Positions 8,608-63,929 of a stretch of DNA of 64,000 nucleotides are shown here, piece after piece. How positions within the stretch are numbered: the first letter of the stretch is position 1; each line of letters begins with the position of its first letter. Under the pieces are notes generated by a model. The model was not told the origin of the DNA and searched no databases. It saw only the letters and a list, made by a program, of their open reading frames with translations. The DNA lies in the IMG/VR virus record IMGVR_UViG_3300044712_002668, positions 124,001 through 188,000 of that record, one strand, 5' to 3'. Made by a program: the position numbers and the translations under genes.

Positions 8608-8628
8608 TAATTTTTTTGCATACTAAGT

Positions 8629-9618
8629 ATGCCAATTCCAAAGCTTTGTATAGGTCCTATGTCTAAAGAAATTGTAGATTGTATAATAGATTTTACGCAA
8701 TCTACAGGGAATATTATTTGGTTTATACCATCCAGAAGGCAGATAGAATATAATGGTGGGTATGTAAATAATTGGACCACAGAAAAGTTCTTTAAATATG
8801 TTCGTTACAAATCAAGTGTTAACATATTGATTCGAGATCATGGGGGTCCTGGACAGGGATTGTCAATGGATGATGGTGTAAAATCTATATTATGTGATGC
8901 ACATTTTATGGATGGTATTCATATTGATCCTTGGAAGCAATATAAAAACTTGGATGAGGCCGCAAGTATTACAGCTGATTTAATGACACTTTGTTATGAT
9001 GTCAATGATAAGTTATTTTTTGAAATAGGAACTGAACAAGCTATTAGATCTTTGTCTGTAGATGAAATGGAATCCTTTATCTTAAAGGTAAAAGATAAAG
9101 TTAAACCCGTATTATTTGATAGAATTTTATATTTTGTAATTCAATCTGGAACAGGTTTAAAAGAAAATCATAATGTTGGTACTTATGATAAACAAAAGCT
9201 TTCAGATATGATAGCTTTATGTAGAAAGTTTGGCTTTAAATCTAAAGAGCATAATGGTGATTATATCTCAAACAAAGATATCAAAGATAGATTTGATGGT
9301 GGGTTGGATACTCTAAACATTGCCCCAGAGTTTGGTTATATTCAGACAAGGTTTGTACTGAATGAGATTAGTTCAAATGACGAGCTGTACAACAAAATGT
9401 TCAAGATATGTTTTGATTCTAATAAGTGGCGTAAATGGGTTGATGATGATTTCAAACCTTACGATAGAAAAGATGAACTTATCCTAATATGTGGACATTA
9501 TGTTTTTTCACATCCTGAAATTAAAAGTATAACAGATAATATAGTTTGTTTTGAAGAAAGAGTCAAGTTGGTTATAAAACAAAAATTGCAAGATTATTTT
9601 GAGGTGTTAAGTGCTTAA
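8629..9618 (+). CDS. GatZ/KbaZ-like TIM-barrel sugar epimerase/aldolase-family protein
   Basis: RDHGGP, HIDP, EIGTE, KEHNGDY, NIAPEFG. Confidence 0.6.
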   Translation: MPIPKLCIGPMSKEIVDCIIDFTQSTGNIIWFIPSRRQIEYNGGYVNNWTTEKFFKYVRYKSSVNILIRDHGGPGQGLSMDDGVKSILCDAHFMDGIHIDPWKQYKNLDEAASITADLMTLCYDVNDKLFFEIGTEQAIRSLSVDEMESFILKVKDKVKPVLFDRILYFVIQSGTGLKENHNVGTYDKQKLSDMIALCRKFGFKSKEHNGDYISNKDIKDRFDGGLDTLNIAPEFGYIQTRFVLNEISSNDELYNKMFKICFDSNKWRKWVDDDFKPYDRKDELILICGHYVFSHPEIKSITDNIVCFEERVKLVIKQKLQDYFEVLSA

Positions 9619-34538: not shown

Positions 34539-34964
34539 ATGGCTAATAGAAAAACAATCATAATAGTTGATGAGGCAATTGTTGATGGATATGTTCTAAC
34601 ATACTCATCTATAGATGGATATTTCAAACCATTGCCAGCTTCTGGCGGTATTGCGCCAGCAACAGTAACAGATGTATCATCCCCAACCTATACTGTAACT
34701 GCTTATGATTTCAACCAACGTTTTAGAATGCTATACAACGGAAGTAGCTGTCAGGTTACATTGCCAGCAGCGGCATCTTTAACAGAAGGTTCTACTTGGA
34801 CATTTAAAGATGTAGATGGATATGCTGGAACTTATACTTACAGTGTGGTTGCCGGGGCTAATACAACAATAGACAAGGCTAGTAGCTGGACATTCCCATC
34901 AGCTCCCTATACCGCTCTTAGCCTTGTATATCATAGTTTGTCTGCAAACTGGGAAGTTATTTAG
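34539..34964 (+). CDS. Putative virion structural protein
   Basis: 'VTLPAAASL..G....FKD.DG' fibre-associated pattern; N-terminus resembles that of 38321..43546. Confidence 0.6.
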   Translation: MANRKTIIIVDEAIVDGYVLTYSSIDGYFKPLPASGGIAPATVTDVSSPTYTVTAYDFNQRFRMLYNGSSCQVTLPAAASLTEGSTWTFKDVDGYAGTYTYSVVAGANTTIDKASSWTFPSAPYTALSLVYHSLSANWEVI

Positions 34965-36484
34965 TAGTTGATAAACTTAATCATTCTCCAAGTATTTGCC
35001 GAAGCATTTGCGCAAATATAAAACTCTCCAGTAGTACTTTTTCTAACCTCACAGTTGCCTGGGTTGGCAGGAAAAGCTGCGTCTGGAAATACGGTCAAGG
35101 CACTAGAGTCAAAGGCTGTAGAGTATACTTTACGTCCCGTAGTGATTCTTATTTCATCTAAACATCCATCAAGATAAGTATAGACAGATCCTGTATAGTA
35201 TTTACCAAAGCGTAATACTGGATAGAATCTAGTTATATTGTAATTTAATGAACCTGTAGAATATTTAGTGCCATTGACATACAGAGCTAGACATGATTGA
35301 TCCGTTGTACCTATAAATTCTCTTTGTATAGCTACATGGCTCCATGTATTAAGTGATATAGCAGAGGATTGTACGCTTACAAAGGTTGTATCAGTTCCCA
35401 TATATGCCGTTACAACACCATTTGATTCTAGTTTCAAATATACACCAACCAATCCTGCTGAATAATCCTGATAGAATATGGCTGATCCAGAGGCGTTGAA
35501 AGCTCTTGGATAAACCCAAGTTTCTATTGTCCATTCTTCAAAGCCTGCGTTTACTACAGTATCGCATATATTCACTTCAAGCACAGAGCTTGTACCATTG
35601 AAATCCAAAGATGCATTACCGAATTTATTGATTGAAGTGTTATAGGTCGTATTTATTAAAGCATAACAAGCTGGATATAATCCAAAGTTCATTCCATACA
35701 TTTTGTTATATTGATCGGCATAGTACGCTTGCGATCTTATTGTATTTTCTACACGAACATCCCAGATAGTAGCTTTACTTGTACCATTTCCCTGATCTCC
35801 TAAAACAGAATATTGTCCATGTGTTCCGTATGAGACTGGGGTTCCTGGCGTAGTATATTCTGTTCCAACCAAGCTTCCATTCATATATACTTTTAATAGA
35901 CCCAGCGATGCATCGTATGTCATTGACAGCAAATACCATGCATTTAAAGATAGCATGTGATCTGTAATAAGTATAACAGTACGAGATGATACTCCAAAAG
36001 CTACACCAGCATACCATCGTCCATTATTAGAGTCTGATATACCAATACCCCAGGACTCCCAGGGGCCAGTCCATGAGTTATCAGCTCTATATGATTTGTC
36101 AACAAAAGCTGCCCAACTGGAACTGAAACTATCAAGCTTTACCCAGAAACTTACAGACAGTGTGTTTGTATATTCACCTACAGAAGTGTATCCTGAACCG
36201 AGGCGGCATGTACCGTTGTTTGAGTTTACTGCGGTAGGGCTTGCTCCAAGAGGGCTATTTACTATTGTTGGAGTTCCGAAATCTTTTCCTAAACTTAGTG
36301 TTCCTGCATTACCTGTATTGACCCATGGTGAATCATTTTCACCCAATAGCCATTGGATACCAGTATAACCATCTACAGCCACAGTTGAGCTAGTAGTGGT
36401 GTTACAGTGAGCGTGATACATTGTATGTAATGTTGGCAGATTTGAATCAGTTAGCGGAATTCTTTGTGGTGGAAAGTAACTCAT
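34961..36484 (-). CDS. Double LamG/ConA-like domain protein
   Basis: Two jelly-roll motif sets (SVSFWVK...YMNG...WDVRVE; WTIETWVYP...WSHVA...LDEIRIT). Confidence 0.75.
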   Translation of the reverse strand: MSYFPPQRIPLTDSNLPTLHTMYHAHCNTTTSSTVAVDGYTGIQWLLGENDSPWVNTGNAGTLSLGKDFGTPTIVNSPLGASPTAVNSNNGTCRLGSGYTSVGEYTNTLSVSFWVKLDSFSSSWAAFVDKSYRADNSWTGPWESWGIGISDSNNGRWYAGVAFGVSSRTVILITDHMLSLNAWYLLSMTYDASLGLLKVYMNGSLVGTEYTTPGTPVSYGTHGQYSVLGDQGNGTSKATIWDVRVENTIRSQAYYADQYNKMYGMNFGLYPACYALINTTYNTSINKFGNASLDFNGTSSVLEVNICDTVVNAGFEEWTIETWVYPRAFNASGSAIFYQDYSAGLVGVYLKLESNGVVTAYMGTDTTFVSVQSSAISLNTWSHVAIQREFIGTTDQSCLALYVNGTKYSTGSLNYNITRFYPVLRFGKYYTGSVYTYLDGCLDEIRITTGRKVYSTAFDSSALTVFPDAAFPANPGNCEVRKSTTGEFYICANASANTWRMIKFINY

Positions 36485-37377
36485 AGGTTTCCTCTTACAT
36501 ACCGTAAATCCATACCAGTATCATCAAGCCTTGTCCAAATATTAGATGCGTTTTTAATTGTTAAAGCATTATAACCATCTGGTTTAATTTCTCCAATGGT
36601 AGCTGATGCTGATGATATAGAATCTGTAAAAGCTTGAGTTGGTGCTAGAAAGTTCTTTGCAAGGATACCTGAGTCATAGAAATTACCACCACGATACCAA
36701 GTGTATCCGCTTGTAATTCTTACTTCATCAAGCCTGCCTGTTAAATATAAACCATTATGTGGATAGTATCCCATATACAAATCATATGGAGAATTGAAAG
36801 TATCAGTTGGTAACAACTTAACATAGTTCGTTTGCATTGCACCGTTTATAAACATTATTAGGAAATTGTTATCCCTACATATTGCTACGTGATTCCATAC
36901 ATTCAGTGGTAAAGTAGAGCTTGATAGGAGAACAGGTTTCCATGAGAAAATCCCGTTAAGAGTGTATAGAAAACCAATAAGAGGATCTGCCGGGTTACTG
37001 GTAGTAGCAAGATACCAACCTCTTTGATCCGCATTTGATGAGCAATTTATTATTGGTTTATCACTTGATTGTTGTGGAATGTTTATCCAGAACTCTATGG
37101 TAAAGTCTTTGTTAGATAAATTAACTATTCTGTCAAATTCTCCACAGTATACAGATCCGCCCCCACCAAAATAAAAACATCCAGTTCCAAATTTTGGATT
37201 TGTGGCATCAATTATAGCGTTTCCTAGCATGTTCAAAGTGTTATTATATATTGATGAGTCTACAGTGTTTGTTTGACCTTGTGTACCATTGGCATGACAA
37301 TGTAATTTGACATATTGACTATGTAAATTAGTATCTGTTGTAGCTGGTTTGAAATATGTTGGAGGTATATATGTCAT
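36481..37377 (-). CDS. LamG/ConA-like domain protein
   Basis: LHCHANG...DSS, KFG, DFTIEFW, WNHVA, FING, LDEVRIT. Confidence 0.8.
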   Translation of the reverse strand: MTYIPPTYFKPATTDTNLHSQYVKLHCHANGTQGQTNTVDSSIYNNTLNMLGNAIIDATNPKFGTGCFYFGGGGSVYCGEFDRIVNLSNKDFTIEFWINIPQQSSDKPIINCSSNADQRGWYLATTSNPADPLIGFLYTLNGIFSWKPVLLSSSTLPLNVWNHVAICRDNNFLIMFINGAMQTNYVKLLPTDTFNSPYDLYMGYYPHNGLYLTGRLDEVRITSGYTWYRGGNFYDSGILAKNFLAPTQAFTDSISSASATIGEIKPDGYNALTIKNASNIWTRLDDTGMDLRYVRGNL

Positions 37378-38222
37378 AGCACTCCTTTGAATACGGTGTT
37401 CTTTATTTGCTTCCAGGTTGGCGCAACAATATCAGTACACATATAAACATTTCCATATGCATCTTGTTTCATATCACCGACAAATGTAGCGGCTGGCATA
37501 ACAGGATTTGTCAATGGACCTGGCGTGAAATCTGCTGTATATAAAGCTTGGCCAATTGTAATACGAACATCATCAACATAACCATACATGCTTTTTTGTC
37601 CGCCAGGAAATGGTGAGTAATATCCTATATTCCAATTTGCACTTGATCTCATTAAAAATTTAGAATCTACTGGAATAGTATTTTGTAGTTGACCATTTAG
37701 ATACATTTTTATACTAGTAGTACTATTATTTCGTACAACGGCTACATGATACCATTGGTTTGTAGTAAATGCGCTTGAGCCTATTGCTGCCACCCAATTA
37801 TTTGTCCCCTTCCTAGCCCATATAAACAAAAATATGTTATTATCAGTAATCAATATAGGACCTTGTTGATCAGCGTCAGTATAACTACAAAGAAACGCTT
37901 GGTATCCAATATTTACTTGTGTGGGATATATCCACATTTCAATTGTGAAATCTTTATCATCAAAATTTAAAAGACCCCTACTATTATCCAGAGTTACTTT
38001 GTTTGTTACAGTGCCATCAAAATAAAGAGATGACGATCCATATTTATATACTGATGTAGATATTACAGCCGAACCAGAAGCAGTGTATGTTTTGTTATAC
38101 AAACTGCTATCTGTCATTGCTTGAGATCCATTAGTTCCTTCACAATGAAATAGTGTTTTTGTATAAAACGCAGAGAAATCTGCAATTGGTACTTTGGGTG
38201 GCATTGGTGGAATGTAAGTCAT
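37374..38222 (-). CDS. LamG/ConA-like domain protein
   Basis: FHCEGTNGS...DSS, KYG, DFTIEMW, WYHVAVVR, YLNG, VDDVRITIG. Confidence 0.8.
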   Translation of the reverse strand: MTYIPPMPPKVPIADFSAFYTKTLFHCEGTNGSQAMTDSSLYNKTYTASGSAVISTSVYKYGSSSLYFDGTVTNKVTLDNSRGLLNFDDKDFTIEMWIYPTQVNIGYQAFLCSYTDADQQGPILITDNNIFLFIWARKGTNNWVAAIGSSAFTTNQWYHVAVVRNNSTTSIKMYLNGQLQNTIPVDSKFLMRSSANWNIGYYSPFPGGQKSMYGYVDDVRITIGQALYTADFTPGPLTNPVMPAATFVGDMKQDAYGNVYMCTDIVAPTWKQIKNTVFKGVL

Positions 38223-38320: not shown

Positions 38321-41300
38321 ATGACAAATAGGCAAACTGTTATAATCCCTGATGGCGTTGTTTATCCAGACGGTTACGTGGTTACATATGAATTATCTAC
38401 AGATTCGTTTGTGCCAAAATCACCATTGACTGTGATAGGACCTACTGGTCTGGGGTATTCAGGTTTAACAACAAGCAATACTTTTGCTTCAAATGCTACA
38501 GGCACTTTGTTTCTCACTACAAACAAGTCCGCATCAGAGTTGGCTTTCAGTACAGGTGATAGAATCAGAGTTAGTTCTACCAATGTTACTACTGATTATG
38601 TAGAAGGTGTTATCACGTCATTTGTTGGTACGTTATTGACGTTGCCAATTGATAGAAGTTCAGGTTCTGGAACACATTCAAGCTGGAATATTGGATTGGT
38701 AGGTGATGTTGGAGCCACTGGATCTACAGGAGCCACAGGGTCTGCAGGAAACACAGGCCCAACCGGCCCTACAGGTCCAACTGGAGCTACCGGCCCTACA
38801 GGACCAACAGGACCATTATCAACAGTATTGGCAGTTGGCAATACCACTGATGGATACAATATTGTACTTACCGGATCTGATAGATTGTCAACTAGTGCTG
38901 GTTATCTTGCAAAATCAGGAACACAGATACAGTTATACGGTCTTGATGGTGTTACAGGACTAGATGGATATTCTGTTTATATTCATTCAGGAAATTCTAC
39001 GGATGGATACTCTGGTACTGCTGCTTTAATATCGGCAGCCACTTCTGGTGTTAGCGCTGGCGGTTTGAATATTTACACAGGTAGTTATGGAAGTTATGGC
39101 GGGGCTGCAAGCGTTAATGTTAATGGCGCAAGCTCTTCCGGTTCTGCATATTGGTATTTCAACTCTGGTGGTTTCGGGGGTAGTACAGGGTCTACTTTTC
39201 AATTAGGGTATGCATCACCAACTTCGTCATATGGATGGGGACTTACAGGAGGCAGGTTTAACAGTATTGTAGGAACCGGTGCCTCTATTGAGGGAGATGC
39301 TGTTACAGCATCTCAAGGGTCTAGAATATACATGAGCACCGGTATTTCAACCGATGGGTATACCGGATCATCATTAACACTTGGAAGAGCTATTAATGGA
39401 ACTAATGCTGGTAGTTTCAATTTATATACAGGAAGCTATGGAAGTTATGGTGGTGCTGCTAGTGTAAACGTTAATGGGGCAAACTCCTCTAGTTCTTCTT
39501 ATTGGTATTTTAGTTCTGGAGGGTTTGGTGGAAGTACCGGGTCTACTTTTCAACTTGGATATTCTTCAGATACATCGGCATATGGATGGGGTTTAACAGG
39601 AGGTAGATTTAATAGCGTTGTAGGAACTGGAGCGTCTATTGAAGCGGATTCAGTTACAGCATCTCAAGGCGCTCAGATATACATGAATACAGGAACCTCT
39701 ACTGATGGTTATAGCGGAGTAGCTATAACATTAGGAAGGGCTGTTAATGGAACACAGGCTGGTGGTTTAAACCTGTATACTGGAAATTATGGAAGTTATG
39801 GTGGAGGGGCAAACGTAAACATTAATGGAGCAACAAATTCAAGCTCTGCTTATTGGTATTTCAATTCTGGAGGGTTTGGTAGCAATGCAGGCTCTAGTTT
39901 TCAGCTTGGTTATTCAACACCAACATCAGCGTATGGTTGGAAACTTGCTGGAGGAAAGGTAGGAGGAATTAGCACTACGGGAGCATCTATTGAGGGAGAT
40001 GCCGCCACCACAACTCAAGGTGCTCAGATACAGATGAGTACTGGTATATCAACTGATGGTTATAGTGGTACGCAGTTAACATTGGGAAGGGCTATTAATG
40101 GAACTAATGCTGGTAGTTTAAACCTGAGCACTGGAAATTATGGAAACTATGGTAAAAGCGCCAGCGTGAATATCAATGGAGCAAACATCTCCACCTCTGC
40201 ATATTGGGCTTTCAATTCTGGAGGATTTGGATCACATACAGGATCTAGTTTTAGACTGGGGTATGCAGATGCGACACAATCTGATGGCTGGGCTTTAACT
40301 GGTGGCAATTATAACGGAGTAAGTGATACTGGTGCTAGTTTCTCAGGATCTTCTGCATTATCAACAAATGGTTCAAACATAACTCTTACATCTGGAAAAT
40401 CTACTGACGGGTACTTGGCAGCTACAGTAAACGTATTTGGTGGTAATAACTCTACTAGAGATGGTTATGTTGATATCAATTCTTGGTTGATGTTGAGAAG
40501 AAAGTCAGCGCCTGTCGGTTTAACAAACACTTTATATGCGAAGTCAGCTACAAATGAACTTCATTGGATAGATAACACTGGTAGTGATAATATCATATCT
40601 CCACCAGGATCGGGACCCACCGGCCCAACAGGTCCAACAGGAGCAACTGGGCTTGGATATGCTGGAAATCAGGCGATTAGCCCCAACGTCCTTTTGCCTT
40701 TCACAGGTTCCCAGGTTTTCACCTGCACACAGAATGCTGGGACTAACGCTTTTGCTGCTGGAACCTACATAAGACTAGCCCACCCAACCACCCCTTCGAC
40801 GGATTTCATGTTGGGTACGATCACAGCCTATGCCCCTAACGGGGATATGACTGTTAACGTAACGTACAGCACCCAGAACGTGGTTAGTAGTTCGGTATGG
40901 GCCATTTCTGTAGCTGGCATTCCTGGGCCTACGGGAGCCACTGGAGCTACAGGCCCAACAGGTGCTACTGGACCCACAGGCCCGGCAATATCAGGTAGTG
41001 ACGGATATGTTCTTCAATATCAAAATACAACACTAACAGCACAATCTGCTTTGTATACAACACCAACTGCAAGGGCAGCGGCACCAACTTTAGGATTTAT
41101 ACGTTCTGCTAATGGTGATTCAATAATAGGTACAAAAACATCTGGTGGTACTAGCTTTACTGCTTTGGGATATGGATCGGCTTCTTCTGATCGTTTGCAG
41201 CTTGGTGATAGCACATCTTGCTCTTTTACAGATATTAGAGCTTCGAGCGCTGTTACTTTTGCAGTGAATGGTAGTGGTGGGTTATATCTTTCAACATCAG

Positions 41301-43546
41301 TATTTCAGCTAAATGGAATACCATTGGATTTGGTTGCGGACACAGCTTATGCTGTTGGTGGTACTATAAAAGCTGTAGGAACAATATCAGGTTACACTGG
41401 AATAGCTGCTAATACAGCCGGTGGGGCTGTAACTATAAAGGGCGGAGATAGATACAACTCTGCTTCTGGCAATAGTGGTGGAAGTGTTAGTATTTTAGGA
41501 ACTGATGGATATAATCCAGGTGCTGTAACAATACAATCTGGATCTGCAACAGGAACAGTTGCAGGGGGTAATGCCCCAACAATCACCATTGCTGGTGGAG
41601 CTGGTAATGCTTATACAGATGGCAGCTCTATAAGTTTATCTGGTGGTGCTGGTGGTGCTGGAAGAAATGGTGGAAGTATTACACTTACATCAGGTGGCGG
41701 CGCCGGTCCAAGCGGTGGTATAACAATACAAACATCATCTTCTGGCGGTATTGCTGGTCCTATTGTTATTCAGACAGGAAACTCATCTACATCAAGTGAT
41801 ATCACTATTCAAGCTCAAGGCGGTTCTAGTGGTAACGTTAATATTTACACTTCTGCAGGAAGTACTGCTGGAAATATAAATATCAAAGCAGCACTTGGTG
41901 GTTCATCAGGCGGTGGAGGAAATGTAAATCTTTCTTCTTGTAGCGGTACAACGGGTACAGCAGCATCTTTATCATTAATAGCGGCAAACAATACTACTGC
42001 TGTAAATGCTGATGGTCAGATAAGTATGATTGGCGCACAGATAATATCTGCCAACATGATAAAATCAAGACAGTATCCAAACGATAGCAATACTCAGCTT
42101 TGGTATAAACTTGATGAAACAGGAACACCTTGGGCTAACTCTGGAGCGCTTGGCACATTGAATATGACAAAAACAGGAGCTAGCACAGTATCAGTTGTGC
42201 CAGGTTTATTTGGAACAAATGCCGTTTTGTTTACTGCAGGAAACTCTTCTATATTGACTACAGGAGCAACCTCATTAGGAGAATATTCCACTTTCACACT
42301 TTCGTTTTGGGGTTATTTGAACTCATATTCGAGCGGAGGAATATTTGTAATAAAGCATTATTGGTTGGCCTCTAGTATTTGGGGAACGCCATATGGTTTG
42401 ATTGTATCTCTGGATGGTGGTGGAGTGGGTGGATGGATGATTAACGTTCCAGATAATTCTGGAACCACACAACATCAAACTGTTATGCCTACAAAGCTAC
42501 CACTAAAGAAATGGATACATATAGGAATGACAGTTGACGGCTCTAATAACATAAACCTATATCAAAACGGAGCTTTAGTATATTCAGCAGCTCTTGGGTA
42601 TACAGTAGGATATGGAAGTACTCATGGTGCTTGGAATATAGGAGGATATGTAGCTTCAAATGCTGTTGGTCAGCCATTGGACGGCATTGTTGAGGATGTT
42701 AGGATGGAAAACGTTGTAAGAAATCCTAAGTATTTCTCTGATGTTTATGGAATGGGTATAGGTAAGATTATGTATGATGGAAGTACTGCTGCTGATACTA
42801 ATACATATCTAAAATGGACATTTGACGAACAGAACGGACCTTGGGCACATAGTGGAAGTTATGGTAGTGCTTTATCTATGGCTTCCGGTCAAGGAACAAC
42901 AAATATAGTTCCAGGAATAATTGGAAGCGGAATAAATACATCAAATGGTCATGTTCTAACGGCTGCTACTAGCGTTTCCCCAGGAAACACATTTACAGTT
43001 TCAGCTTGGGTTTATCTTTACAACTACATATTAGCAACGGCAGATAATCAGCAAGGAATCATTGTATCAAAGAATTATAATACTGCATCATGGGGAAATC
43101 CATTTATTTCAATACATATGGAGTTAACAAATGATCGTGATGGTTCTTGGACGGCTTATGTAAATAACGGATCTCTTAACTCAATTACTATTCAAGAGCC
43201 TTTCAAAATACCTCTAAACACATGGTCTTTGGTAGCTATAACATATGACGGATCATCTTTTAAAGCATATCTGAACGGAGTTTTGGCAGGATCAATACCT
43301 GTAACTGGAAATGTAAATTATGGAAATAATGGACCATGGATGGTTGGTGGTCACTCATGGGTATCTCCGTACCAATTTTTTGATGGTGTTATTGATGATG
43401 TTAGGATTGAAAACACTGTAAGAAGTGCGGCTTATTTGCAGGCAATGTATCAAAAAGCTTTTGCTGGTATAACATATGTAGATAGGGACGGAAATTTGGT
43501 GTATCAATCACCAAATGGCACTATCTCTGTAATGGGAGCTGGTTGA
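38321..43546 (+). CDS. Large collagen-containing fibre protein with tandem repeats and two C-terminal LamG domains
   Basis: GPT/GAT collagen triplets, 117-aa repeats, Gly-rich 'GG.I.I..G' repeats, two LamG motif sets. Confidence 0.8.
38996..40399 (+). repeat. Four tandem 351-nt (117-aa) in-frame repeats
   Basis: STDGY codons start at 38996, 39347, 39698, 40049, 40400 (exact 351-nt period). Confidence 0.9.
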
Positions 43547-48061: not shown

Positions 48062-48727
48062 ATGGCCTACGTTCTTTATGTTGCTGATACGGAAACAACA
48101 GGTACAGATGCTGAGAAGCATGACATCATAGAAGTATGTTTTTGGAGAGTTGGATCTCTAGATAACATACTTACCCAAGATGACAATAAAACTTGGTGGA
48201 TGAAACCATTGAACGTAGCCTCCATTGAAGATGAGGCTTTACGGGTAAACAAACACAAAAAAGAAGATATTCTACATAAGACTGCAGAAGGTAAGGAAAA
48301 GTATAAACATCCATCTGAAGTTCTGCCAGAAATCGAGATGTGGTTTATGCAGGATGGGGCGGCAGCAGAGGAACGTGTACTCGTAGGTCATAACCCAGAT
48401 TTCGATTATAAGTTTCTTCTCAAGTTATGGGAAAAGTCTGGCAATGCCAATGAGTTTCCTATTGGCTATTGGATAGATAACAGTGATGGTACAAGAAGGC
48501 ATCAGATCTTTAAGTATGATACAATGGAGCTTGTACGTTTGATTGATCTGTGTACAGGAAAGAAAAGAAACTACTATAATCTAAGCTCTTTGGTTAAAGC
48601 CTTTAACATAACAAAGGCTCAGGCACATAGAGCTGATGGTGATACAAAAATGACAAAAGATTTGTTCCTCAAAATTATCGAGGTGCTAAAACCTGTTTTG
48701 AGTGAGAAGTTTTCTGATTGTTACTAG
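48062..48727 (+). CDS. DEDDh 3'-5' exonuclease (DnaQ-like)
   Basis: DTETTG, GHNPDFD, DT, AHRADGD. Confidence 0.88.
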   Translation: MAYVLYVADTETTGTDAEKHDIIEVCFWRVGSLDNILTQDDNKTWWMKPLNVASIEDEALRVNKHKKEDILHKTAEGKEKYKHPSEVLPEIEMWFMQDGAAAEERVLVGHNPDFDYKFLLKLWEKSGNANEFPIGYWIDNSDGTRRHQIFKYDTMELVRLIDLCTGKKRNYYNLSSLVKAFNITKAQAHRADGDTKMTKDLFLKIIEVLKPVLSEKFSDCY

Positions 48728-50187: not shown

Positions 50188-50373
50188 ATGATTTTGCACA
50201 AAACACTTTCCTTTGAGGAAGCTTTAGAATACCTTGCTTATGCCGTAATGATGCGTGATTTACCAGACGGATTTGATGGTAAAATTACATGTGAACTTAA
50301 TGATGATGGGTCTATAGATATATACGCCGCACCATCAGAAACCGAAGAAAAAGAAAATAATACTATGAATTAA
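50188..50373 (+). CDS. Small acidic hypothetical protein
   Basis: GGAG RBS, TGATATAT motif upstream. Confidence 0.55.
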   Translation: MILHKTLSFEEALEYLAYAVMMRDLPDGFDGKITCELNDDGSIDIYAAPSETEEKENNTMN

Positions 50374-51328
50374 ATATATTTTTCAATATATCTCCGCCCA
50401 TGTTCAAAACATCAACGTGTTGTTTCTTCAAGCTATCTAATGGTACTTTTGAATTATCGAAAGCTTGAAACACTTGTAAGCCACCTTGACCGGCTTTGGA
50501 GGCAATATTGACACCTCCTATATTTTCATTTGCTTTGTTTCTTTGCAATCCAAGTGTTTGTAATAAATAATTTGATGTTTCAGTGGTAGATCCATAATCT
50601 GTTGGGATGGCAGAGTGGGCAATATAGAATTTCTTGGAAGGATCTTTCATAGCTTCCTTTGCCCATTCAACCCATTCTTTCATATCATTAGGGTTTACAT
50701 TACCATTTGTTTTTGAACTATGCATTCCATCAAGAAGAACAACAGAATCCAAGTTGTTTTTTATTGGTGTAGCTAAATTGTTTTTATCTTTAAGTATTCT
50801 TCTGATAGGATCATAGCCACCAGACCATCCAACAAAAGCTACCTTTCCTACTTTAAGATCATTTCTGTTTAGCTGTTGTTTTAGTTGGTTCATTACTGAG
50901 CTTACAGCATTGTTTACAAATGCAGCGTTTCCATATACCAAACCAGCAGCCATTCCTCCCATACCAGTAGCATCTGGTGGTAATCCCCATTTTGCCTTGA
51001 AGGCAGCACTTGCGGCCGGATCTTTAGGAATATTTACAGACATTATATCTGCTGTAATCAATATTGCATTTGAATTCGCTTGTGCTAGAGCTTTGGTATT
51101 ACCACCCCTGAACCATATAATAAAGTTTACAGATCCATCGGGTTGTATCACTTGTGGTCCGGGCCAAAATACAGAAGAACATCCAGGTGGCCCGCTTAAA
51201 GAAACTTTAAGCTGAGAATATTTTTTCTCACCACCAGAAGATGGAAAAGCTTTTTCTACAGCATCAGTAAGTGGACCTGCTAATTTTTGTAGCTGTTCAA
51301 GTGCTAGTTTTCTAAAATTTCTATCCAT
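50363..51328 (-). CDS. Alpha/beta-hydrolase-like protein
   Basis: Nucleophile elbow VGWSGGY, LLDGMH, C-terminal His. Confidence 0.6.
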   Translation of the reverse strand: MDRNFRKLALEQLQKLAGPLTDAVEKAFPSSGGEKKYSQLKVSLSGPPGCSSVFWPGPQVIQPDGSVNFIIWFRGGNTKALAQANSNAILITADIMSVNIPKDPAASAAFKAKWGLPPDATGMGGMAAGLVYGNAAFVNNAVSSVMNQLKQQLNRNDLKVGKVAFVGWSGGYDPIRRILKDKNNLATPIKNNLDSVVLLDGMHSSKTNGNVNPNDMKEWVEWAKEAMKDPSKKFYIAHSAIPTDYGSTTETSNYLLQTLGLQRNKANENIGGVNIASKAGQGGLQVFQAFDNSKVPLDSLKKQHVDVLNMGGDILKNIFNS

Positions 51329-51373
51329 AGTATAATTTCAAATTAAGCAGAGAGTCTGTTTATGGTTATATCC

Positions 51374-51574
51374 ATGGTTATGGATACAAACCTAGAATTA
51401 ATAAAAGATACTCTGCTTCATTTGTTTACTGAGGGCCAGGTCTTGCCTCGCTGCCCGCATTGTGCTATGTTTCTCGGCCCCAAAGAATTGAATGGTAAAT
51501 GTTCTGCTTGTTCCGGTAGAATTGAATTTTCTACCGTAGTCTGGATAAGTACCGACAACATTCCGAAAGCATAA
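51374..51574 (+). CDS. Small zinc-ribbon protein
   Basis: CPHC...CSAC. Confidence 0.55.
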   Translation: MVMDTNLELIKDTLLHLFTEGQVLPRCPHCAMFLGPKELNGKCSACSGRIEFSTVVWISTDNIPKA

Positions 51575-51576
51575 AG

Positions 51577-53082
51577 ATGTCAAAAGATAAAGTTAAGACG
51601 GAAGATAAGCCTCTTATTCCAGAAGGTAAATATGATGTTACCGATGTCAAAGAATTGAACTTCTTTGATCTATCTGGAGAAAAGGCAAAAACAAAAGGTA
51701 CTTCTAATAAGTTTTATCATGCCGAAATCCAGAAAGAAAAATCTGGAACTCGTGTTCAGCTATATACTATGTACGGTGCCACTGGAAAAGTACAAGCCAG
51801 GGAGTGGCGGTATTTTTCAGATGAGCTTGCTGCCAAGAAAGAATTCAATAGAATTATTTCCAGCAAACTAAAAAAAGGATATGTAGAGATTGATGTAGCT
51901 CAAAGAGCTTTAGGATCTGATTCTGCTAAACAGATAACCAAACCAGTTGTTTTGGCAAATGCAGATCATCTTGTTACGCCTGTTTCTTCAAAGCTTGATG
52001 CTGGACAAAAAAGAATTGTTGAAATATTCTTTGGAAGTCAGGATCATTTCGTAGCTACCACTCTTAAATGTCCACTAGGACAGCTATCAAATACACAGAT
52101 AGATAAAGGCCGTGACGTTCTAAATCAAGCCAAAGATATTGTAAATAGTGGTAGTATTGATAAGAATAAGCTTACTGATTTAACCAATCAATTTTACGGC
52201 TTGATTCCACATAATCTAGGAGGAGGGGCTAGAGGTCAGATGACCGAGCTTCTTCTTGATACTCTTCCAAAGATTGTGGGAAAGGAAAGCGATCTTGATA
52301 CCTTGCTTGATGCGAAGCAAGTCAATGCTGTTTTGAAATCCGATTCAACTATTGATACAAAGTATGATAGTTTGAATTGTGATTTCCTTTCAGTAGATCC
52401 TTCTAGTGATATTTTCAAATTTATGTCCTCGTATTTTCAGGATACAAAAGTACGTGGACATGGTTATGATAAAGAGCGTGTAGTAAATATTTGGGAAATG
52501 AACCGCAAGGATGATAAAGAAAAAGCATTCTTGAAGAATACTGATATAATTGCAAAGCAATGTGGTAAACATTCCTTTGTTTCTGAAACTGAACGTTTAT
52601 CAGGTGGGAAGAATAAGCTGTGGACTCCTGATAAGCGTCCTGATTTAGATAAAGATTTGGTAAAGCTATATACCAATGCAAATGTTTGGTTGTGTTGGCA
52701 TGGAACCAGATCTGCTAATCTGGTTGGTATTACCAGGCGTGGTTTGTTGATTAGACCATCTGGAGCTGTGTATACTGGATCCATGTTTGGAGATGGTAAG
52801 TATTTTGCCTGGCAAAGTACAAAGTCTTTGAACTATACAGATGGTGGATATTGGACTGGAGGTAGACATAATGTATCTTCCAGGTTTATGTTTATCATGG
52901 ATGTTGCTATGGGTAAGCAACACATCTCTCATAATTCACACTTTTTCAAAAAACCACCAGCCGGATTTCATTCTGTATATGGTAAGGCAGGCTCTGGCTT
53001 GTGGAATGATGAAATGATTACATACGATTTTGATGATAAGGATAATCAGTCTGCAATAAGATACTTGTTGGAAATCGTTTAA
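51577..53082 (+). CDS. Poly(ADP-ribose) polymerase-like: WGR + regulatory + catalytic domain
   Basis: WGR-like 'SNKFY...YG.TG...K.KKGY'; regulatory 'CPLGQLS..QI..G...L', 'LTNQFYGLIPH'; catalytic H-Y-E triad WHGTR / MFGDGKYFA / NDEMITY. Confidence 0.9.
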   Translation: MSKDKVKTEDKPLIPEGKYDVTDVKELNFFDLSGEKAKTKGTSNKFYHAEIQKEKSGTRVQLYTMYGATGKVQAREWRYFSDELAAKKEFNRIISSKLKKGYVEIDVAQRALGSDSAKQITKPVVLANADHLVTPVSSKLDAGQKRIVEIFFGSQDHFVATTLKCPLGQLSNTQIDKGRDVLNQAKDIVNSGSIDKNKLTDLTNQFYGLIPHNLGGGARGQMTELLLDTLPKIVGKESDLDTLLDAKQVNAVLKSDSTIDTKYDSLNCDFLSVDPSSDIFKFMSSYFQDTKVRGHGYDKERVVNIWEMNRKDDKEKAFLKNTDIIAKQCGKHSFVSETERLSGGKNKLWTPDKRPDLDKDLVKLYTNANVWLCWHGTRSANLVGITRRGLLIRPSGAVYTGSMFGDGKYFAWQSTKSLNYTDGGYWTGGRHNVSSRFMFIMDVAMGKQHISHNSHFFKKPPAGFHSVYGKAGSGLWNDEMITYDFDDKDNQSAIRYLLEIV

Positions 53083-53989: not shown

Positions 53990-55012
53990 ATGAAAATTGT
54001 AAAAGGATATTCGTTTGATGATGTTCTTCTGGTTCCAAAAAAATCAGATATTCCTTCTCGTAATTTACCTCTGGATGTAAAATTACCTAAAGGTTTCAGT
54101 GTAAAAATTCCAATCGTTTCAGCTAACATGAAAACTGTTACTGAAGTTTTTATGGCGCAATCCATAGCACGCCAAGGAGGAATGGCTTTATTACACAGAT
54201 TTGATACAACAAAAAACCTACTGAAAAATTATCTAGATTCTATTCTTGCTTTTTCAAGAGATATAGAATCTAGACAAAATATTGGCGTATCTTTAGGAAT
54301 AAAAGATGAAGATATGTCTCTTGCTAAAGAGTATATAGATTTAGGTTGTAAATTGTTCTGTGTAGATGTGGCTCATGGTCATCATACTATGGTTATTTCT
54401 TTTATAGAAAAATTAAGAAGTAACTATCCGGATATTTTGATTATAGCTGGAAATGTAGCTACACCAGAAGGTGCAAAGGATTTATGGAATGCTGGTGCTG
54501 ACATAATCAAGATAGGTGTTGGGCCAGGATCAATCTGTTCTACAAGAGTTGAGACTGGTAATGGTTATCCACAACTAAGCGCATTGGATTTAATATGTAA
54601 TACTTATTATAATCCAAGAAACGATGAACAGCCTATGTTTATAGCTGATGGCGGGATTCGTTTTGCTGGTGATTGTGTCAAAAGCTTATGCTTTGCAGAT
54701 CTTGTTATGATTGGTAACCTTTTTGCAGGTACCGATGAATCACCAGGAAAAGTTGTTTCTTTTCATGATAAAAAATATAAAGAATATGCAGGTTCTTCTA
54801 CACATAAAAGTTCAAGAGTAGAGGGAGTTGTTGGGCTTGTTCCATACAGAGGATCTGTTGAAGGTATAATCAAAAAACTTTGTGAAGGCATTCAAAGTGG
54901 TATGAGTTACCAGGGTGCTCATACTCTTAAAGAGTTGAAACTAAATCCTGAATGGGTAGAGATCTCTGGTTCAGGTTTAATAGAAAGTCATCCACATGAT
55001 ATATTGAGGTAA
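53990..55012 (+). CDS. IMP dehydrogenase / GMP reductase family (no CBS domains)
   Basis: FDDVLLVP, SANM, DVAHGH, AGNVAT, GVGPGSICSTR, ADGGI, EGV. Confidence 0.9.
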   Translation: MKIVKGYSFDDVLLVPKKSDIPSRNLPLDVKLPKGFSVKIPIVSANMKTVTEVFMAQSIARQGGMALLHRFDTTKNLLKNYLDSILAFSRDIESRQNIGVSLGIKDEDMSLAKEYIDLGCKLFCVDVAHGHHTMVISFIEKLRSNYPDILIIAGNVATPEGAKDLWNAGADIIKIGVGPGSICSTRVETGNGYPQLSALDLICNTYYNPRNDEQPMFIADGGIRFAGDCVKSLCFADLVMIGNLFAGTDESPGKVVSFHDKKYKEYAGSSTHKSSRVEGVVGLVPYRGSVEGIIKKLCEGIQSGMSYQGAHTLKELKLNPEWVEISGSGLIESHPHDILR

Positions 55013-56649: not shown

Positions 56650-56708
56650 ATTCAATGTCGAGCAGGCTGCTGAAAAGGACTCCCATAACCAAAGGAGTCC
56701 TTTTCATT

Positions 56709-57347
56709 ATGTCCATAATTTTTTACGTTCTAGATACAGAAACGACAGGTTTGAAAACTGGATGGCATGAAATCAATCAAATATCAGTTCTTAACTCTGC
56801 ATCAAAAGATCAGATAACAATTGATATATGTGTTGACTACCCCGAAAGGGCTTCCAAAGAAGCCTTGGAAGTTCAAGGCAAATCAGTCCATGATCTGGAT
56901 AATGGAATTTCTCTGAAAGATGCAGTCATTCAAGTTAATGAATTCTTTCAGAAAGATAATTCAAATAAAGCTGCCAGGTGTATTGTGGCTCACAATGCTC
57001 CTTTTGATCGTAAATTTTGCCACTCAGCTTGGGACTCTGTTGAGTTGGAATTTCCTGCCGATTTGTGGATTTGTACCAAACAGTTGGCTCAAAGATATGT
57101 TAAAAAGTATGGTGGAGAAAAAATAGCTCAAGCTCAAAGCTCCCCGAAACCAAAGTTCGGTTTGAACAACTTCCTTCAAGGGGTAGGAATTACTCCAAAA
57201 TTAGGAGCACACCGTGCTGATACAGATACAATCAATACTCTTGAACTTTTCAATTGGTTGCTAAACTCTCAAACAGAATATGTTTCTCTTATCGAACGTA
57301 TCCCTCATAAAAAAGAAAACGTTAAAGATTTATTAGATTCTTATTAA
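56709..57347 (+). CDS. Second DEDDh 3'-5' exonuclease
   Basis: LDTETTG, AHNAPFD, AHRADTD; AGGAG upstream of MSIIF. Confidence 0.85.
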   Translation: MSIIFYVLDTETTGLKTGWHEINQISVLNSASKDQITIDICVDYPERASKEALEVQGKSVHDLDNGISLKDAVIQVNEFFQKDNSNKAARCIVAHNAPFDRKFCHSAWDSVELEFPADLWICTKQLAQRYVKKYGGEKIAQAQSSPKPKFGLNNFLQGVGITPKLGAHRADTDTINTLELFNWLLNSQTEYVSLIERIPHKKENVKDLLDSY

Positions 57348-57731: not shown

Positions 57732-59327
57732 ATGTCTAGCGCAAAGTTTGTACAGCAAGTTATTGGTAACGATCCAAACCGTAAGGTTATCAAGATTGAT
57801 TCTTATTTGTCAGCTAACGAGACTGCTGAAGAGGCAGTGGCTCGTGTATTGCTGACTGGTATTTTGAAGAATCAATTCTATCGTTCGGTAGATGATATTA
57901 CAAAGGAAGCCCTACCTCTTGTAGAGAATATGGCAGATAGCAATCCTGAATATCTGCTTAAGGCGGCTTGTATTGCTCGTAATAGCCATATGAAGGGTAT
58001 GGTCAAGGTTGCCATTGCAGCAATCAACGGGCATGCAAATGATACTTTCTTGAATCGTGATGAGATCAAGGAAGCTATTGTTTCTTTGTTAGCAACATTC
58101 CATCCTGGTCAGTTGATTCAGTTTGTGGAACTGTGCAAGTCCAAGAAGTTTGGGCGTGGATTTGGTTCCAGACCCCAGAAGTGGGTTCGTTCTGCCATGG
58201 AGCGTTGGAATGCGTGGAAGCTTGAGGAGAATACCCTTAAGTATCCAACAGCATTGAATCAACTTGTACGTTTGGTTCATCCACGTTTCAAGGATGAGCG
58301 TGCTGGATTGGTATTGTACGTTCTTGATGGCAAGAAGTCTGAAGCAACTGGTGCTAAGCAGAAGGTTGTGGAAACTTTAAAGGCTGACACTTCTGATAAG
58401 AAGAAGATTGCCAATGCCATCTTGGATCATAAGATTCCATGGGATGTTATCAAGGGTTTTGCAGGCTTGGATGGTCCTATTGCCATGGCTGCAATGACTC
58501 AAATGGGATTGACGGCTTTATTGCTTAATATCCGTTCTTTGGAAGAGCATAATGTTTTCTCTACCACAGATGGATTGAGGGCTCTAAGCCTCAAGATGGA
58601 TGAGGTCAAGGATGGTCGTGCCATTCCTATGGACTTTGCAAAGCCATATATCTACGCTACCAATAGCAAGGTAAAAGATATCTTGCTGGATGCGATGGTA
58701 TCTACTCTTGATGTACCAATGCCTGCTATCGAAGGTAGGAAGGTTGGTGTGTCTGTTGATATCTCTGGTTCTATGGCCGGTGAAACTCTTAAAACTGCCG
58801 GTCTTCTTGCAGTTCCTTTCCTGAAGGCAAATGATTTGTGGTTTACTACTTTTGATACTTCATTGTATGAAGAGGGTAATACCATTAATCAGGGACGTAG
58901 GGATTTTTGGGGTTATTCCTCAAATGGTTTCTGTCCTAAGTTGAAGGGTAGGAGTCGCAAAGATCAAGTGAAGTCTTTGCTTGATTTGAAGACCGCTGGT
59001 GGAACCGATGTCTCCCAGCCAATTGTTCATGCAATTGCTTCACAAAGGTTTTTGGATGTTATGGTGCTTATCACCGATGAGCAGCAGAATGCCGGAACTC
59101 CTTTGATGAGGGTTTGGAATGAGTATTTGGCAAAGGTAAACCCAAGAGCCCATCTTTGGGTAATCAATGCCACAAATTCAAACTGGCATGCTGCAGATTT
59201 TGGTCATAGGAATGTTACAGTGTATCAGACTATGACCCCAGCATTATTCAAGAATCTTGAATACGTTGGTCAGGACTTGGTCAAAGCCATCAAAGACTTT
59301 GATTTCAAGGATGTTGGGAAGCGTTAG
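57732..59327 (+). CDS. Ro60/Rsr-like TROVE domain RNA-binding protein with vWA domain
   Basis: 'LLTG....QFY', 'GRGFGSRPQK....', 'LKYP...LVRLVHP', 'IPW', 'MGLTALLLNI..L'; vWA MIDAS DISGSM, GGTD, LITDEQ; AGGAGG RBS. Confidence 0.9.
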   Translation: MSSAKFVQQVIGNDPNRKVIKIDSYLSANETAEEAVARVLLTGILKNQFYRSVDDITKEALPLVENMADSNPEYLLKAACIARNSHMKGMVKVAIAAINGHANDTFLNRDEIKEAIVSLLATFHPGQLIQFVELCKSKKFGRGFGSRPQKWVRSAMERWNAWKLEENTLKYPTALNQLVRLVHPRFKDERAGLVLYVLDGKKSEATGAKQKVVETLKADTSDKKKIANAILDHKIPWDVIKGFAGLDGPIAMAAMTQMGLTALLLNIRSLEEHNVFSTTDGLRALSLKMDEVKDGRAIPMDFAKPYIYATNSKVKDILLDAMVSTLDVPMPAIEGRKVGVSVDISGSMAGETLKTAGLLAVPFLKANDLWFTTFDTSLYEEGNTINQGRRDFWGYSSNGFCPKLKGRSRKDQVKSLLDLKTAGGTDVSQPIVHAIASQRFLDVMVLITDEQQNAGTPLMRVWNEYLAKVNPRAHLWVINATNSNWHAADFGHRNVTVYQTMTPALFKNLEYVGQDLVKAIKDFDFKDVGKR

Positions 59328-60643: not shown

Positions 60644-60724
60644 GGGGCGTGAGGCATCTGGTAGAGGCCGCCAGTCTTATAAACTGGGAAGATAACGAGC
60701 AGAGTTCAAATCTCTGACGCCCCA
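60644..60724 (+). tRNA. tRNA-Ile(UAU)
   Basis: Acceptor GGGGCGT/ACGCCCC-A, anticodon arm CCAGT-CTTATAA-ACTGG, T-arm CAGAG-TTCAAAT-CTCTG; long variable region; no encoded CCA. Confidence 0.8.
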
Positions 60725-60747
60725 CTGGGTATAGTGAAAATTTAATA

Positions 60748-60819
60748 CGGGGTATAGGACAGAGGTAGTCCGCTAGTTTTGGGAACTAGAAGTCGCTGGT
60801 TCAAATCCAGCTACCCCGA
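60748..60819 (+). tRNA. tRNA-Pro(UGG)
   Basis: CGGGGTA/TACCCCG-A, D-arm GGAC/GTCC, CTAGT-TTTGGGA-ACTAG, GCTGG-TTCAAAT-CCAGC. Confidence 0.92.
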
Positions 60820-60821
60820 CA

Positions 60822-62945: not shown

Positions 62946-63061
62946 ATAAGCGGAACGCGAGTTTAGAATCACCATTAGTATAATGGCAGTACGGTACTCA
63001 TATGAGTACCAGTGCAGGTTCGAATCCTGTAGGTGATTTATACAAATTTCGTTCCGCTTAT
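62946..63061 (+). ncRNA. Y-RNA-like RNA 4 (YrlA-like architecture, with a tRNA-like domain)
   Basis: 12-bp ATAAGCGGAACG/CGTTCCGCTTAT, AATCACC/GGTGATT acceptor-like helix, D-like GTAT-AATGGCA-GTAC, palindromic GGTACTCATATGAGTACC arm, T-arm GCAGG-TTCGAAT-CCTGT. Confidence 0.8.
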
Positions 63062-63076
63062 TTATTTAAGGGTTAA

Positions 63077-63274
63077 ATGCAAGATGAATTTCTTAGAGAG
63101 AGAATATCAGCTGTTGGAAGTTATGGTAAAATACTAGAGATAGTATTTGATGATATGTATAGGGAATTTGAAACGTCTTATAATAAAAAATTTCATAAAC
63201 TTGGGAATCTTCATTGTATAATAAAATACAAAGATATAGATGATAATGTAATGTTTTATTGTGTTCCAAGGTAA
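63077..63274 (+). CDS. Small hypothetical protein
   Basis: 65-aa ORF. Confidence 0.45.
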   Translation: MQDEFLRERISAVGSYGKILEIVFDDMYREFETSYNKKFHKLGNLHCIIKYKDIDDNVMFYCVPR

Positions 63275-63275
63275 T

Positions 63276-63929
63276 ATGTCAAGCGAAAAAGTTTCTTTGG
63301 ATATTAGTTCAATATCAAATTGGATTTGTAACTATGCAACTTCTTATGGTAAGGATACATTACTAGTACCGTTTGATGGTTCAACAAATTCTGCCGTTGT
63401 AACCTGGTGTTGTTTACAATCAACTATATTAAAAACCGGTACACTTAAAGTATTATCTGTTGTTCCTAATAATGAACAAGAATTGTTCAAGAAAATATTC
63501 AATCATTCATATGCTGAATTGCCTGGGAGCCAACTGTATTATCATTCTCTAGAATTAGCTAAAAATTCAAATGGGATATGTGTTGGATGTGTTGATAAAA
63601 CATATGGTTCTTTATATCGTTCCTATAAAAAGTACAATGAGTATTTAGCTGATATTCAGCCTTTATATGATTTCCTATATTCTGAAATTGTAGAGATGTC
63701 AGAGTCTTTAGGTTTCACAAAGAACATTGCCCCGCTTGATTACAGAATATATGAATGGGCTTTACAGCAAGAATCGTATTATAAGATTATTACATCGCTA
63801 GATGCCCCAAATAAATCTTATAAGTGGTATACTTATACAGAAGAACAAAGGTCATTTATTGCAAAAATGCACCAGAGAGAAAAGAAAACAAAACATAAAG
63901 AAATAAAAGTTCCTTACTTCAAAAAATGA
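63276..63929 (+). CDS. Degenerate NAD+ synthetase (NadE)-like protein
   Basis: 'I..WI..Y...', PP-loop-like 'PFDGSTNSAVV', 'Y.KY....ADIQPL.D...SEI.....LG', 'KT.HK'. Confidence 0.55.
   Translation: MSSEKVSLDISSISNWICNYATSYGKDTLLVPFDGSTNSAVVTWCCLQSTILKTGTLKVLSVVPNNEQELFKKIFNHSYAELPGSQLYYHSLELAKNSNGICVGCVDKTYGSLYRSYKKYNEYLADIQPLYDFLYSEIVEMSESLGFTKNIAPLDYRIYEWALQQESYYKIITSLDAPNKSYKWYTYTEEQRSFIAKMHQREKKTKHKEIKVPYFKK

Follow-up and report, generated by a model that had tools for sequence, protein, structure and literature searches.

A phage-encoded PARP with WGR and regulatory domains and an intact H-Y-E triad in an uncultured huge phage

A 64,000-nucleotide stretch of viral DNA (the window; positions 124,001 to 188,000 of IMG/VR record IMGVR_UViG_3300044712_002668) encodes a member of the PARP family, P0001, in which a WGR domain, a helical regulatory domain (HD) and an ADP-ribosyltransferase (ART) catalytic domain follow one another in a single uninterrupted open reading frame (ORF) of 501 residues with an ATG start. 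The gene is real, and its domains, catalytic residues, fold and conservation under selection are established; judged by these residues, the protein is very probably an active ADP-ribosyltransferase. What is new here is the lineage to which it belongs, with a helical insert, an altered WGR motif and a frequent zinc-ribbon gene next to it, none of which is mentioned in the papers on phage PARPs that we read. The gene and its parts are as follows.

51577..53082, plus strand: PARP gene encoding P0001, in the order WGR, HD, ART (ORF, Pfam, Protein Data Bank (PDB) profile and fold match)
51685..51894, plus strand: WGR domain, residues 37-106 (Pfam PF05406, conservation)
52000..52371, plus strand: helical HD or PARP_reg domain, residues ~142-265 (Pfam PF02877, modelled helices)
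52414..53076, plus strand: ART catalytic domain, residues 280-500 (Pfam PF00644, invariant residues, PARP1 alignment)
52507..52680, plus strand: helical insert of the subfamily, residues ~311-368 (segment lengths, model, tree)

All three domains score above their Pfam gathering cut-offs: WGR (PF05406) with 40.1 bits against 22, PARP_reg (PF02877; residues 163-265) with 58.1 bits against 26.8, and the PARP catalytic domain (PF00644; residues 280-471) with 72.4 bits (E 4.7e-20) against 26.7, the last model giving 68.5 bits for the same protein in a genome-wide search of the record. WGR residues N44, K45, Y47, G67, K97 and Y102 are nearly invariant in an alignment of 57 homologs (A1), and the AlphaFold2 model places the HD helices at 142-161, 172-190, 196-209, 230-252 and 259-265 with high predicted local distance difference test (pLDDT) values. 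The C-terminal part of the protein also matches phrog_23333, which is labelled 'polymerase' in PHROGs.

The ART domain carries H375, G376, Y409, K416, S417, Y420 and the catalytic Glu E479, which sits in 'LWNDEMITYD'. The best solved relatives in a single-sequence search were PARP1 catalytic fragments, followed by PARP2, PARP3, PARP4 and tankyrases. That alignment ended short of the proposed catalytic Glu, and we therefore searched the PDB with a profile built from the 57 aligned homologs, which matched PARP1 WGR-CAT and PARP2 over the whole length (E 4e-95). The profile pairs the family motif 'llNDEfivYd' with PARP1 'LLYNEYIVYD', 'HGtRs' with 'WHGSR', 'GlYFA' with 'GIYFA' and 'KSlNY' with 'KSANY', so that K416 and S417 align with the 'KS' of 'SKSANY'. 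H375, Y409, Y420 and E479 thus correspond to H862, Y896, Y907 and E988 of PARP1. H375, G376, Y409, Y420 and E479 are invariant among the 57 homologs, whose identity goes down to 27%, and H-Y-Y-E is kept in 139 of the 141 sequences of a wider homolog set. This invariance of the donor-site residues indicates selection for catalysis. The first-pass annotation, made from the letters of the window, had proposed a PARP with WGR, regulatory domain and intact triad, had quoted the Glu motif NDEMITY and had suggested profile searches for the three domains; each of these readings is borne out, the triad both by alignment and by fold.

Compared as a whole, the AlphaFold2 model (mean pLDDT 90.1, pTM 0.82) resembles the break-bound structures of PARP1 WGR-CAT (DNA double-strand break) and PARP2, with Foldseek E values of ~1e-27 and TM-scores of 0.63-0.72. 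It is very improbable that P0001 is a binding protein with no catalytic activity, or a plain NADase that uses up NAD+ and transfers no ADP-ribose to a target. Regulation could be disturbed by its changed WGR motif and by the large insert next to its active site, both described below, but the donor-site residues do not vary even in the most distant of the aligned homologs, and the model is a well-packed PARP fold of high confidence. The DNA itself is also well supported, as region 51134-52450 is identical, with zero indels, in contigs of an independent rhizosphere study (X2), and matching pieces in a freshwater run (X3) carry a few substitutions and 0 indels. Promoter and terminator scans around the zinc-ribbon/PARP pair gave nothing above shuffled expectation.

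Whether P0001 would build chains or attach single ADP-ribose units is about evenly balanced. The loop before E479 is short, at 9 residues, but it is likewise short in most family members and is therefore no argument against chains; the PARP1 loop before E988 is ~27 residues longer. The first-pass annotation had suggested possible polymerase activity from the catalytic Glu, but the H-Y-E triad is necessary and not sufficient for chain formation, PARP3 being a mono-transferase (bioRxiv 10.64898/2026.10.17.759577).

Phage PARPs of the three-domain design are already known, and P0001 is a further member. Phage PARP genes had been reported from Aeromonas phage Aeh1 and from phi4:1, a Cellulophaga phage (PMC4245714), as well as from a few jumbo phages (PMC7824862); Perina 2014 and Iyer 2021/2022 list phage PARPs, and across viral proteomes PART/PARP ranks with the most frequent ART families (PMC9503650). 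The annotation of Klebsiella phage vB_KpM_FBKp34 gp111 names WGR, regulatory and catalytic domains, and together with the published cases this makes the kind a known one. FBKp34 gp111, XacN1 BBA65562.1 and the proteins of phi4:1, phi17:2 and LR756511 are, like P0001, phage-encoded H-Y-E PARPs, but the annotated phage PARPs share at most 29% full-length identity with it. LR756511 has the insert, whereas the FBKp34, XacN1 and Cellulophaga PARPs fall in other clades and are without it, and none of these annotated phage PARPs is shown with an upstream zinc-ribbon gene.

Two bacterial enzymes, CdPARP from Clostridioides difficile CD160 and HaPARP from Herpetosiphon aurantiacus, have the same WGR - PARP_reg - PARP_cat architecture, H-Y-E triad and similar size, and like P0001 they contain neither zinc fingers nor BRCT. 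P0001 also resembles most bacterial PARPs in having Tyr at the first 'WGR' position (PMC5966428). It differs from these two in ~40 extra residues (the RPDL insert) and in Ala for Arg in the WGR motif; in addition, CdPARP and HaPARP are each paired with a PARG of the DUF2263 type (PMC5966428), whereas none was found in the phage record. Both bacterial enzymes auto-PARylate with activated DNA in vitro (PMC5966428, PMC8120803). Human PARP1 (WGR-CAT), PARP2 and PARP3 are the best matches in sequence and structure and have the same donor-site residues, at ~20-25% identity; P0001 lacks their zinc fingers, BRCT and N-terminal extension, and its insert sits where PARP1 has a short turn.

By its sequence, P0001 belongs to a PARP subfamily known only from viral contigs. 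More than 460 metagenomic proteins match it, the best 120 of which share 47-70% identity and the same three domains, many on contigs of 50-234 kb, and of 1.84 billion cluster representatives, searched exhaustively, 3161 matched at E up to 1e-3. Seven IMG/VR contigs (54-392 kb) encode relatives with 39-58% identity, each of them intact. A scan of one genome per species across 185,579 prokaryote species found no close relative and only two weak WGR-only matches. In a tree of 140 sequences, the 21-member clade that holds P0001 (support 99) consists of viral-contig sequences and metagenomic representatives whose source is unknown; outside it lie the PARPs of Klebsiella phage FBKp34, Xanthomonas phage XacN1 and Cellulophaga phage phi17:2.

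The insert is the first feature of this lineage. The segment that links the strand ending at residue 310 to the catalytic His is 49-66 residues long in the P0001 lineage and 16-24 elsewhere and in PARP1, which amounts to roughly 40 extra residues compared with PARP1 and most kin. It is modelled as helices with pLDDT 95-98 and closes with a conserved 'RPDLD..LY..AN' just ahead of the His-bearing strand. A homologous insert is found in a second clade that includes the 595-kb phage LR756511. With the insert columns excluded, all 22 insert-bearing sequences fall on one side of a branch in the IQ-TREE phylogeny (SH-aLRT 97), which fits a single origin of the insert.

The second feature is the W-G-R motif, which in P0001 reads Y66-G67-A68: the aromatic residue and the Gly are present, but the Arg, which aligns with R591 in the WGRVG of PARP1, is gone. 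Close kin have YGP or WGP, and deeper kin and other clades YGR or WGR; the loss of the Arg is peculiar to the subclade of P0001. Coupling between WGR and HD may differ as a result. Of all the features described here, the lost Arg, the insert and the zinc-ribbon neighbor are the likeliest to alter regulation.

The record that contains the window (G000; 335,988 bp, CheckV completeness 78%, with the window at G000:C1:124001-188000) belongs to an uncultured huge tailed phage of at least 336 kb. At 23-27 kb it encodes a large terminase subunit (phrog_675, E 2.6e-57) followed directly by a portal protein (phrog_16240, E 2.1e-53); these were found by PHROGs searches on single ORFs, while the Pfam models Terminase_6N and Terminase_6C gave 0 matches in the record. 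It also holds 36 tRNA genes and encodes an IF-1 homolog, an M15 peptidase, a UvsW-like helicase, a DnaB-like helicase and a ribonucleotide reductase. A megablast search of 15 kb against cultured phages gave 0 matches, and no phage record exceeds ~23% identity to the DnaB-like helicase. The metagenomes that hold the PARP gene come from rhizosphere, freshwater, wetland and lake samples. An identical copy of the window's zinc-ribbon protein is present on a 454,833-bp contig, from which the genome may be ~455 kb, and the 336-kb 'provirus' record is probably a trimmed piece of a huge-phage contig of ~455 kb and not an integrated prophage.

The same provirus class and the shared zinc-ribbon protein on the longer contig could also be read as a sign that the PARP gene is a cellular, bacterial one caught in a mis-delimited 'provirus'. 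We consider this exceedingly improbable, as the terminase, the portal and the 36-tRNA cluster are on the same record, the gene order around PARP recurs on IMG/VR contigs of 54-392 kb and the prokaryote scan yielded no close relative. The earlier assignment of the gene to a phage thus holds, with a tail-fibre-like match and synteny on many long viral contigs adding to the terminase, portal and tRNAs.

How might the enzyme work? In PARP1-3, break binding is relayed via the WGR domain to the HD, which opens the NAD+ site (bioRxiv 10.64898/2026.10.17.759577). If it behaves like its homologs PARP1/2/3 and the bacterial PARPs that have been assayed, P0001 would be a nucleic-acid-end-activated ADP-ribosyltransferase acting in phage replication, recombination or repair, with end activation, targets and timing all inferred; we favor this reading with moderate confidence. 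The HD would hold the NAD+ site closed until the WGR domain binds a nucleic-acid end or break and the inhibition is lifted. Wherever phage DNA is replicated, recombined or repaired, ADP-ribose from NAD+ would then be attached to the PARP and to proteins close by, or to nucleic-acid ends, and would later be removed by a macrodomain protein or by host enzymes. For the activation step taken singly, that nucleic-acid ends switch P0001 on, we see the chances as equal either way.

A genome search for PARG, macrodomain and NADAR genes had been suggested along with the first-pass annotation; it returned the latter two and no PARG. Neither PARG (PF05028, PF10021; the PF10021 search was positive in the D. 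radiodurans control) nor ARH (PF03747) was found in the 336-kb record, which is ~78% complete, so removal of ADP-ribose would have to rely on the macrodomain or on host enzymes. The two genes that were found are these.

G000 188396-188908 (L002:1396-1908): macrodomain gene, ~12 kb downstream of PARP and ~0.4 kb past the window end
G000 332449-332967 (L003:1474-1992): NADAR gene, 146.7 bits, far from PARP

The macrodomain scores 28.6 bits with PF01661 (cut-off 22) and is closely related to BT1257 and SCO6735 (E 1e-35 to 2afc, 2fg1 and 5e3b), a kinship that places it among the ALC1/TARG1/DarG-like hydrolases. Its best NCBIfam match is the DarG antitoxin, which stays below cut-off since only the macro part aligns. 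SCO6735-class enzymes strip protein-linked ADP-ribose (PMC5087735), and they also reverse thymidine ADP-ribosylation of DNA by DarT (PMC9411070). Macrodomains occur in two of five related viral records, the three without being 18-79% complete. A 392-kb relative (G003, 91% complete) has a strong MacroD-type gene of 141 bits 4.7 kb upstream of PARP on the same strand (L008 / G003:C1:72668-73021), and a second, weaker macrodomain elsewhere in its record. On the P0087 contig (JGI 3300050339) a gene for a 701-residue SNF2-family helicase overlaps the PARP stop codon; eukaryotic ALC1 joins an SNF2 ATPase to a macrodomain that binds poly(ADP-ribose), of the class seen in the phage macrodomain.

Several observations weigh against an end-activated enzyme with a role in phage DNA metabolism. 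The record encodes neither of the dedicated erasers PARG and ARH, and the presence of macrodomain and NADAR genes is a weak sign of a writer-eraser pair. Given the reversal of DarT modification described above, and the fact that NADAR domains stand in for the macrodomain in some DarT-DarG-like systems (PMC9503650), both genes may serve as counter-defence against host DNA ADP-ribosylation of the DarT type and not as erasers for the PARP. The WGR-motif Arg is replaced by Ala or Pro in the P0001 subclade, and the ~40-residue insert adjoins the strand of the catalytic His. No RNA run carrying the PARP gene turned up in the run search. Finally, full-text searches of the literature returned no functional study, biochemical or genetic, of any phage PARP.

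The location of the gene bears on the choice between this reading and its rivals. The region around PARP is one of replication and nucleotide metabolism and lies far from the packaging genes; it is a block with UvsW-like and DnaB-like helicases, ribonucleotide reductase, two RNase-T exonucleases, an IMPDH/GMP-reductase-like gene and ThyX. The order 5' of PARP, conserved in relatives, is an RNase-T-type exonuclease, a glycosyltransferase-like gene, genes for ~205-residue and ~60-residue proteins, an opposite-strand α/β-hydrolase-like gene and the zinc-ribbon gene; 3' of PARP come sometimes Cpn10, then the IMPDH/GMP-reductase-like gene and then ThyX or ThyA. The neighbors in the window are the following.

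48062-48727: RNase-T-type exonuclease
50363-51328, minus strand: α/β-hydrolase-like gene, 321 residues, with GWSGG (Atlas score 0.95-0.96, TM 0.69, no Pfam match)
51362..51574, plus strand: four-Cys zinc-ribbon ORF, 64-70 residues, likely start 51380 (ORF, homologs, model)
53990-55012, plus strand: IMPDH-family gene without the CBS insert
56655-57347: RNase-T-type exonuclease
57732..59327, plus strand: Rsr/Ro60-like gene, 531 residues, with a Ro60 vWA domain and, over its full length, a weak match to bacterial Rsr

A host-takeover or counter-defence effector would ADP-ribosylate host proteins such as RNA polymerase, translation factors, nucleases or defence proteins, in the way the T4 enzymes Alt, ModA and ModB do, with the WGR domain serving only to localise it. 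Comparative surveys propose that phage PARPs act on host proteins like other phage ARTs (PMC7824862, PMC9503650), and the DarG/SCO6735-like macrodomain and NADAR are other ADP-ribose conflict genes in the same genome. We nevertheless regard this role as unlikely. P0001 keeps the full HD and WGR module, which gates activity on breaks in characterised members (PMC5966428, PMC8120803), its neighbors are those of replication and nucleotide metabolism, and, unlike many injected ARTs, it is encoded far from head and packaging genes and is not fused to MuF (PMC9503650). The T4 enzymes are likewise phage-encoded and transfer ADP-ribose from NAD+, but they are R-S-E mono-ARTs without WGR or HD, some of them head-packaged (PMC9503650, PMC8120803); P0001 falls outside that R-S-E group, having H-Y-E with a sensor/autoinhibitor module. 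This agrees with the first-pass comparison of its architecture to PARP2/3 and bacterial PARPs and not to T4 Alt/Mod.

The neighborhood also contains genes for RNA-end enzymes, and the Ro60/Rsr-like and RNase-T genes may form an RNA quality-control or repair set. In relatives, CCA-adding/poly(A) polymerase genes lie near PARP, and in Cellulophaga phage phi17:2 the PARP gene is between tRNA nucleotidyltransferase and DNA ligase. These recurrences would fit an enzyme that ADP-ribosylates phosphorylated DNA or RNA ends, either keeping host exonucleases off phage genome ends or replication intermediates, or working within a module for RNA damage and repair. Nucleic-acid ADP-ribosylation by PARP-family enzymes is established (PMC8385414), and the phage's macrodomain class can take ADP-ribose off DNA (PMC9411070). 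However, the case is built on gene neighborhood, and the adjacency is loose (several kb) in a huge genome where many such genes cluster, so we give this role a small chance only.

The third feature of the lineage, the zinc-ribbon ORF, is a real gene that is often, though not obligatorily, found with PARP. Its stop codon lies 2 nucleotides before the PARP start codon, and the gap is 2-3 nucleotides across loci. Homologous ORFs occupy the same position in L004, L005, L015 and L018, and the P0002 contig has a 75-residue gene there; the ORF is absent in L016, L017 and more distant PARP loci. These homologs were taken from the DNA upstream of PARP loci, as a protein homolog search, poorly suited to such a short and divergent protein, returned only the query itself. 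Four Cys are invariant among homologs of 24-41% identity and the fold is modelled confidently (pLDDT 87), which together argue for a real gene. In L007 (5775-6031) the zinc-ribbon ORF is split over two frames, by a frameshift (decay) or an assembly error, next to an intact PARP gene. A likeness to the PARP1 Zn3 / PADR1 domain was considered and dropped: PF08063 gave 14.9 bits against a cut-off of 25.1 (E 0.023) over 13 residues only, and structure searches returned generic zinc ribbons and no PARP1 chain (best Foldseek E 0.4, VIA Z 3.3). The predicted complex of PARP and zinc ribbon has an ipSAE of 0.00 against a mark of 0.32, which counts neither for nor against binding.

A more elaborate possibility, to which we attach a slim probability, is a break-sensing module of huge phages. 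The insert and altered WGR motif would be fitted to the translationally coupled zinc ribbon, which would be a nucleic-acid-end sensor or specificity factor in trans, comparable to the zinc fingers or HPF1 for PARP1, and the ALC1/TARG1-like macrodomain would act as reader or eraser, the whole marking or protecting phage DNA or RNA ends in the course of infection.

One well-conserved PARP lineage is confined to huge phages of soil and freshwater, with its own insert and often a zinc-ribbon neighbor. If ends activate it as in its bacterial and eukaryotic relatives, huge phages would operate, inside bacteria, an ADP-ribose signal of the DNA-damage type, and this, if true, would bear on how large phages protect or organise their replicating genomes and on the origin of eukaryotic PARPs. 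The practical value of P0001 itself is modest, as culturable PARP phages (Klebsiella FBKp34, XacN1, Cellulophaga phi4:1) are easier systems.

Genes related to NAD+ form a further theme of the genome.

63261..63929, plus strand: NadE-fold ORF, 222 residues (embedding and structure similarity)

This ORF is similar to PF02540 (NAD_synthase) clusters, many from Uroviricota, in embedding (0.94) and fold (TM 0.76-0.81), and its PP-loop is degenerate, with DGSTNS in place of SGGxDS. It has no Pfam or NCBIfam match and could not be assigned to NadE, so that of the first-pass reading of a degenerate NadE-like gene at 63.3 kb, the fold and the degeneracy stand but the family does not gain a profile match. 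A gene of NAD metabolism or another PP-loop ATPase is possible, and its link to PARP is one of shared genome and theme only. Pfam models for NAD_synthase, NAPRTase and NMNAT (CTP_transf_like) gave 0 matches in the record. In a relative whose PARP is 63% identical (L004), a 367-residue gene (8285-9388) lies ~750 nucleotides downstream of PARP, and its C-terminus has a NadD-like NMN/NaMN adenylyltransferase domain, below cut-off. This suggests that NAD+ supply genes travel near PARP in some of these phages.

Some further observations concern the block around PARP and the rest of the record. The α/β-hydrolase-like gene is divergent from the PARP operon and keeps its place in several relatives. 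The IMPDH-family gene at 53990-55012 scores about equally with IMP dehydrogenase and GMP reductase models, all below cut-off. Mobile elements enter the block in relatives (L015 from 11153 onward; P0002 contig; L016:9298-9729): an intein (Hom_end_hint) lies inside the IMPDH-like gene, and LAGLIDADG and GIY-YIG homing endonuclease genes are found among PARP, IMPDH and ThyX. The tRNA genes of the window and the translation gene just beyond it are listed below.

60644-60725: tRNA-Ile(TAT)
60748-60820: tRNA-Pro(TGG)
62967-63039: tRNA-like gene with a two-base anticodon call
G000 188385-188615 (L002:1169-1399), past the window end: IF-1 homolog, 76 residues (PF01176, 59.6 bits), directly 5' of the macrodomain gene

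The 36-tRNA cluster begins in the window and spans 184.6-215 kb of the record, with a second two-base anticodon call at G000 204136-204206. Elsewhere in the window, a trio of minus-strand genes with Laminin_G_3 (concanavalin-like lectin) domains at 34961-38222 is flanked by two giant plus-strand ORFs of 1689 and 1741 residues (29456-34525 and 38321-43546). The second of these has a weak tail-fibre PHROG match, and the lectin genes and giant ORFs may together be a receptor-binding module.

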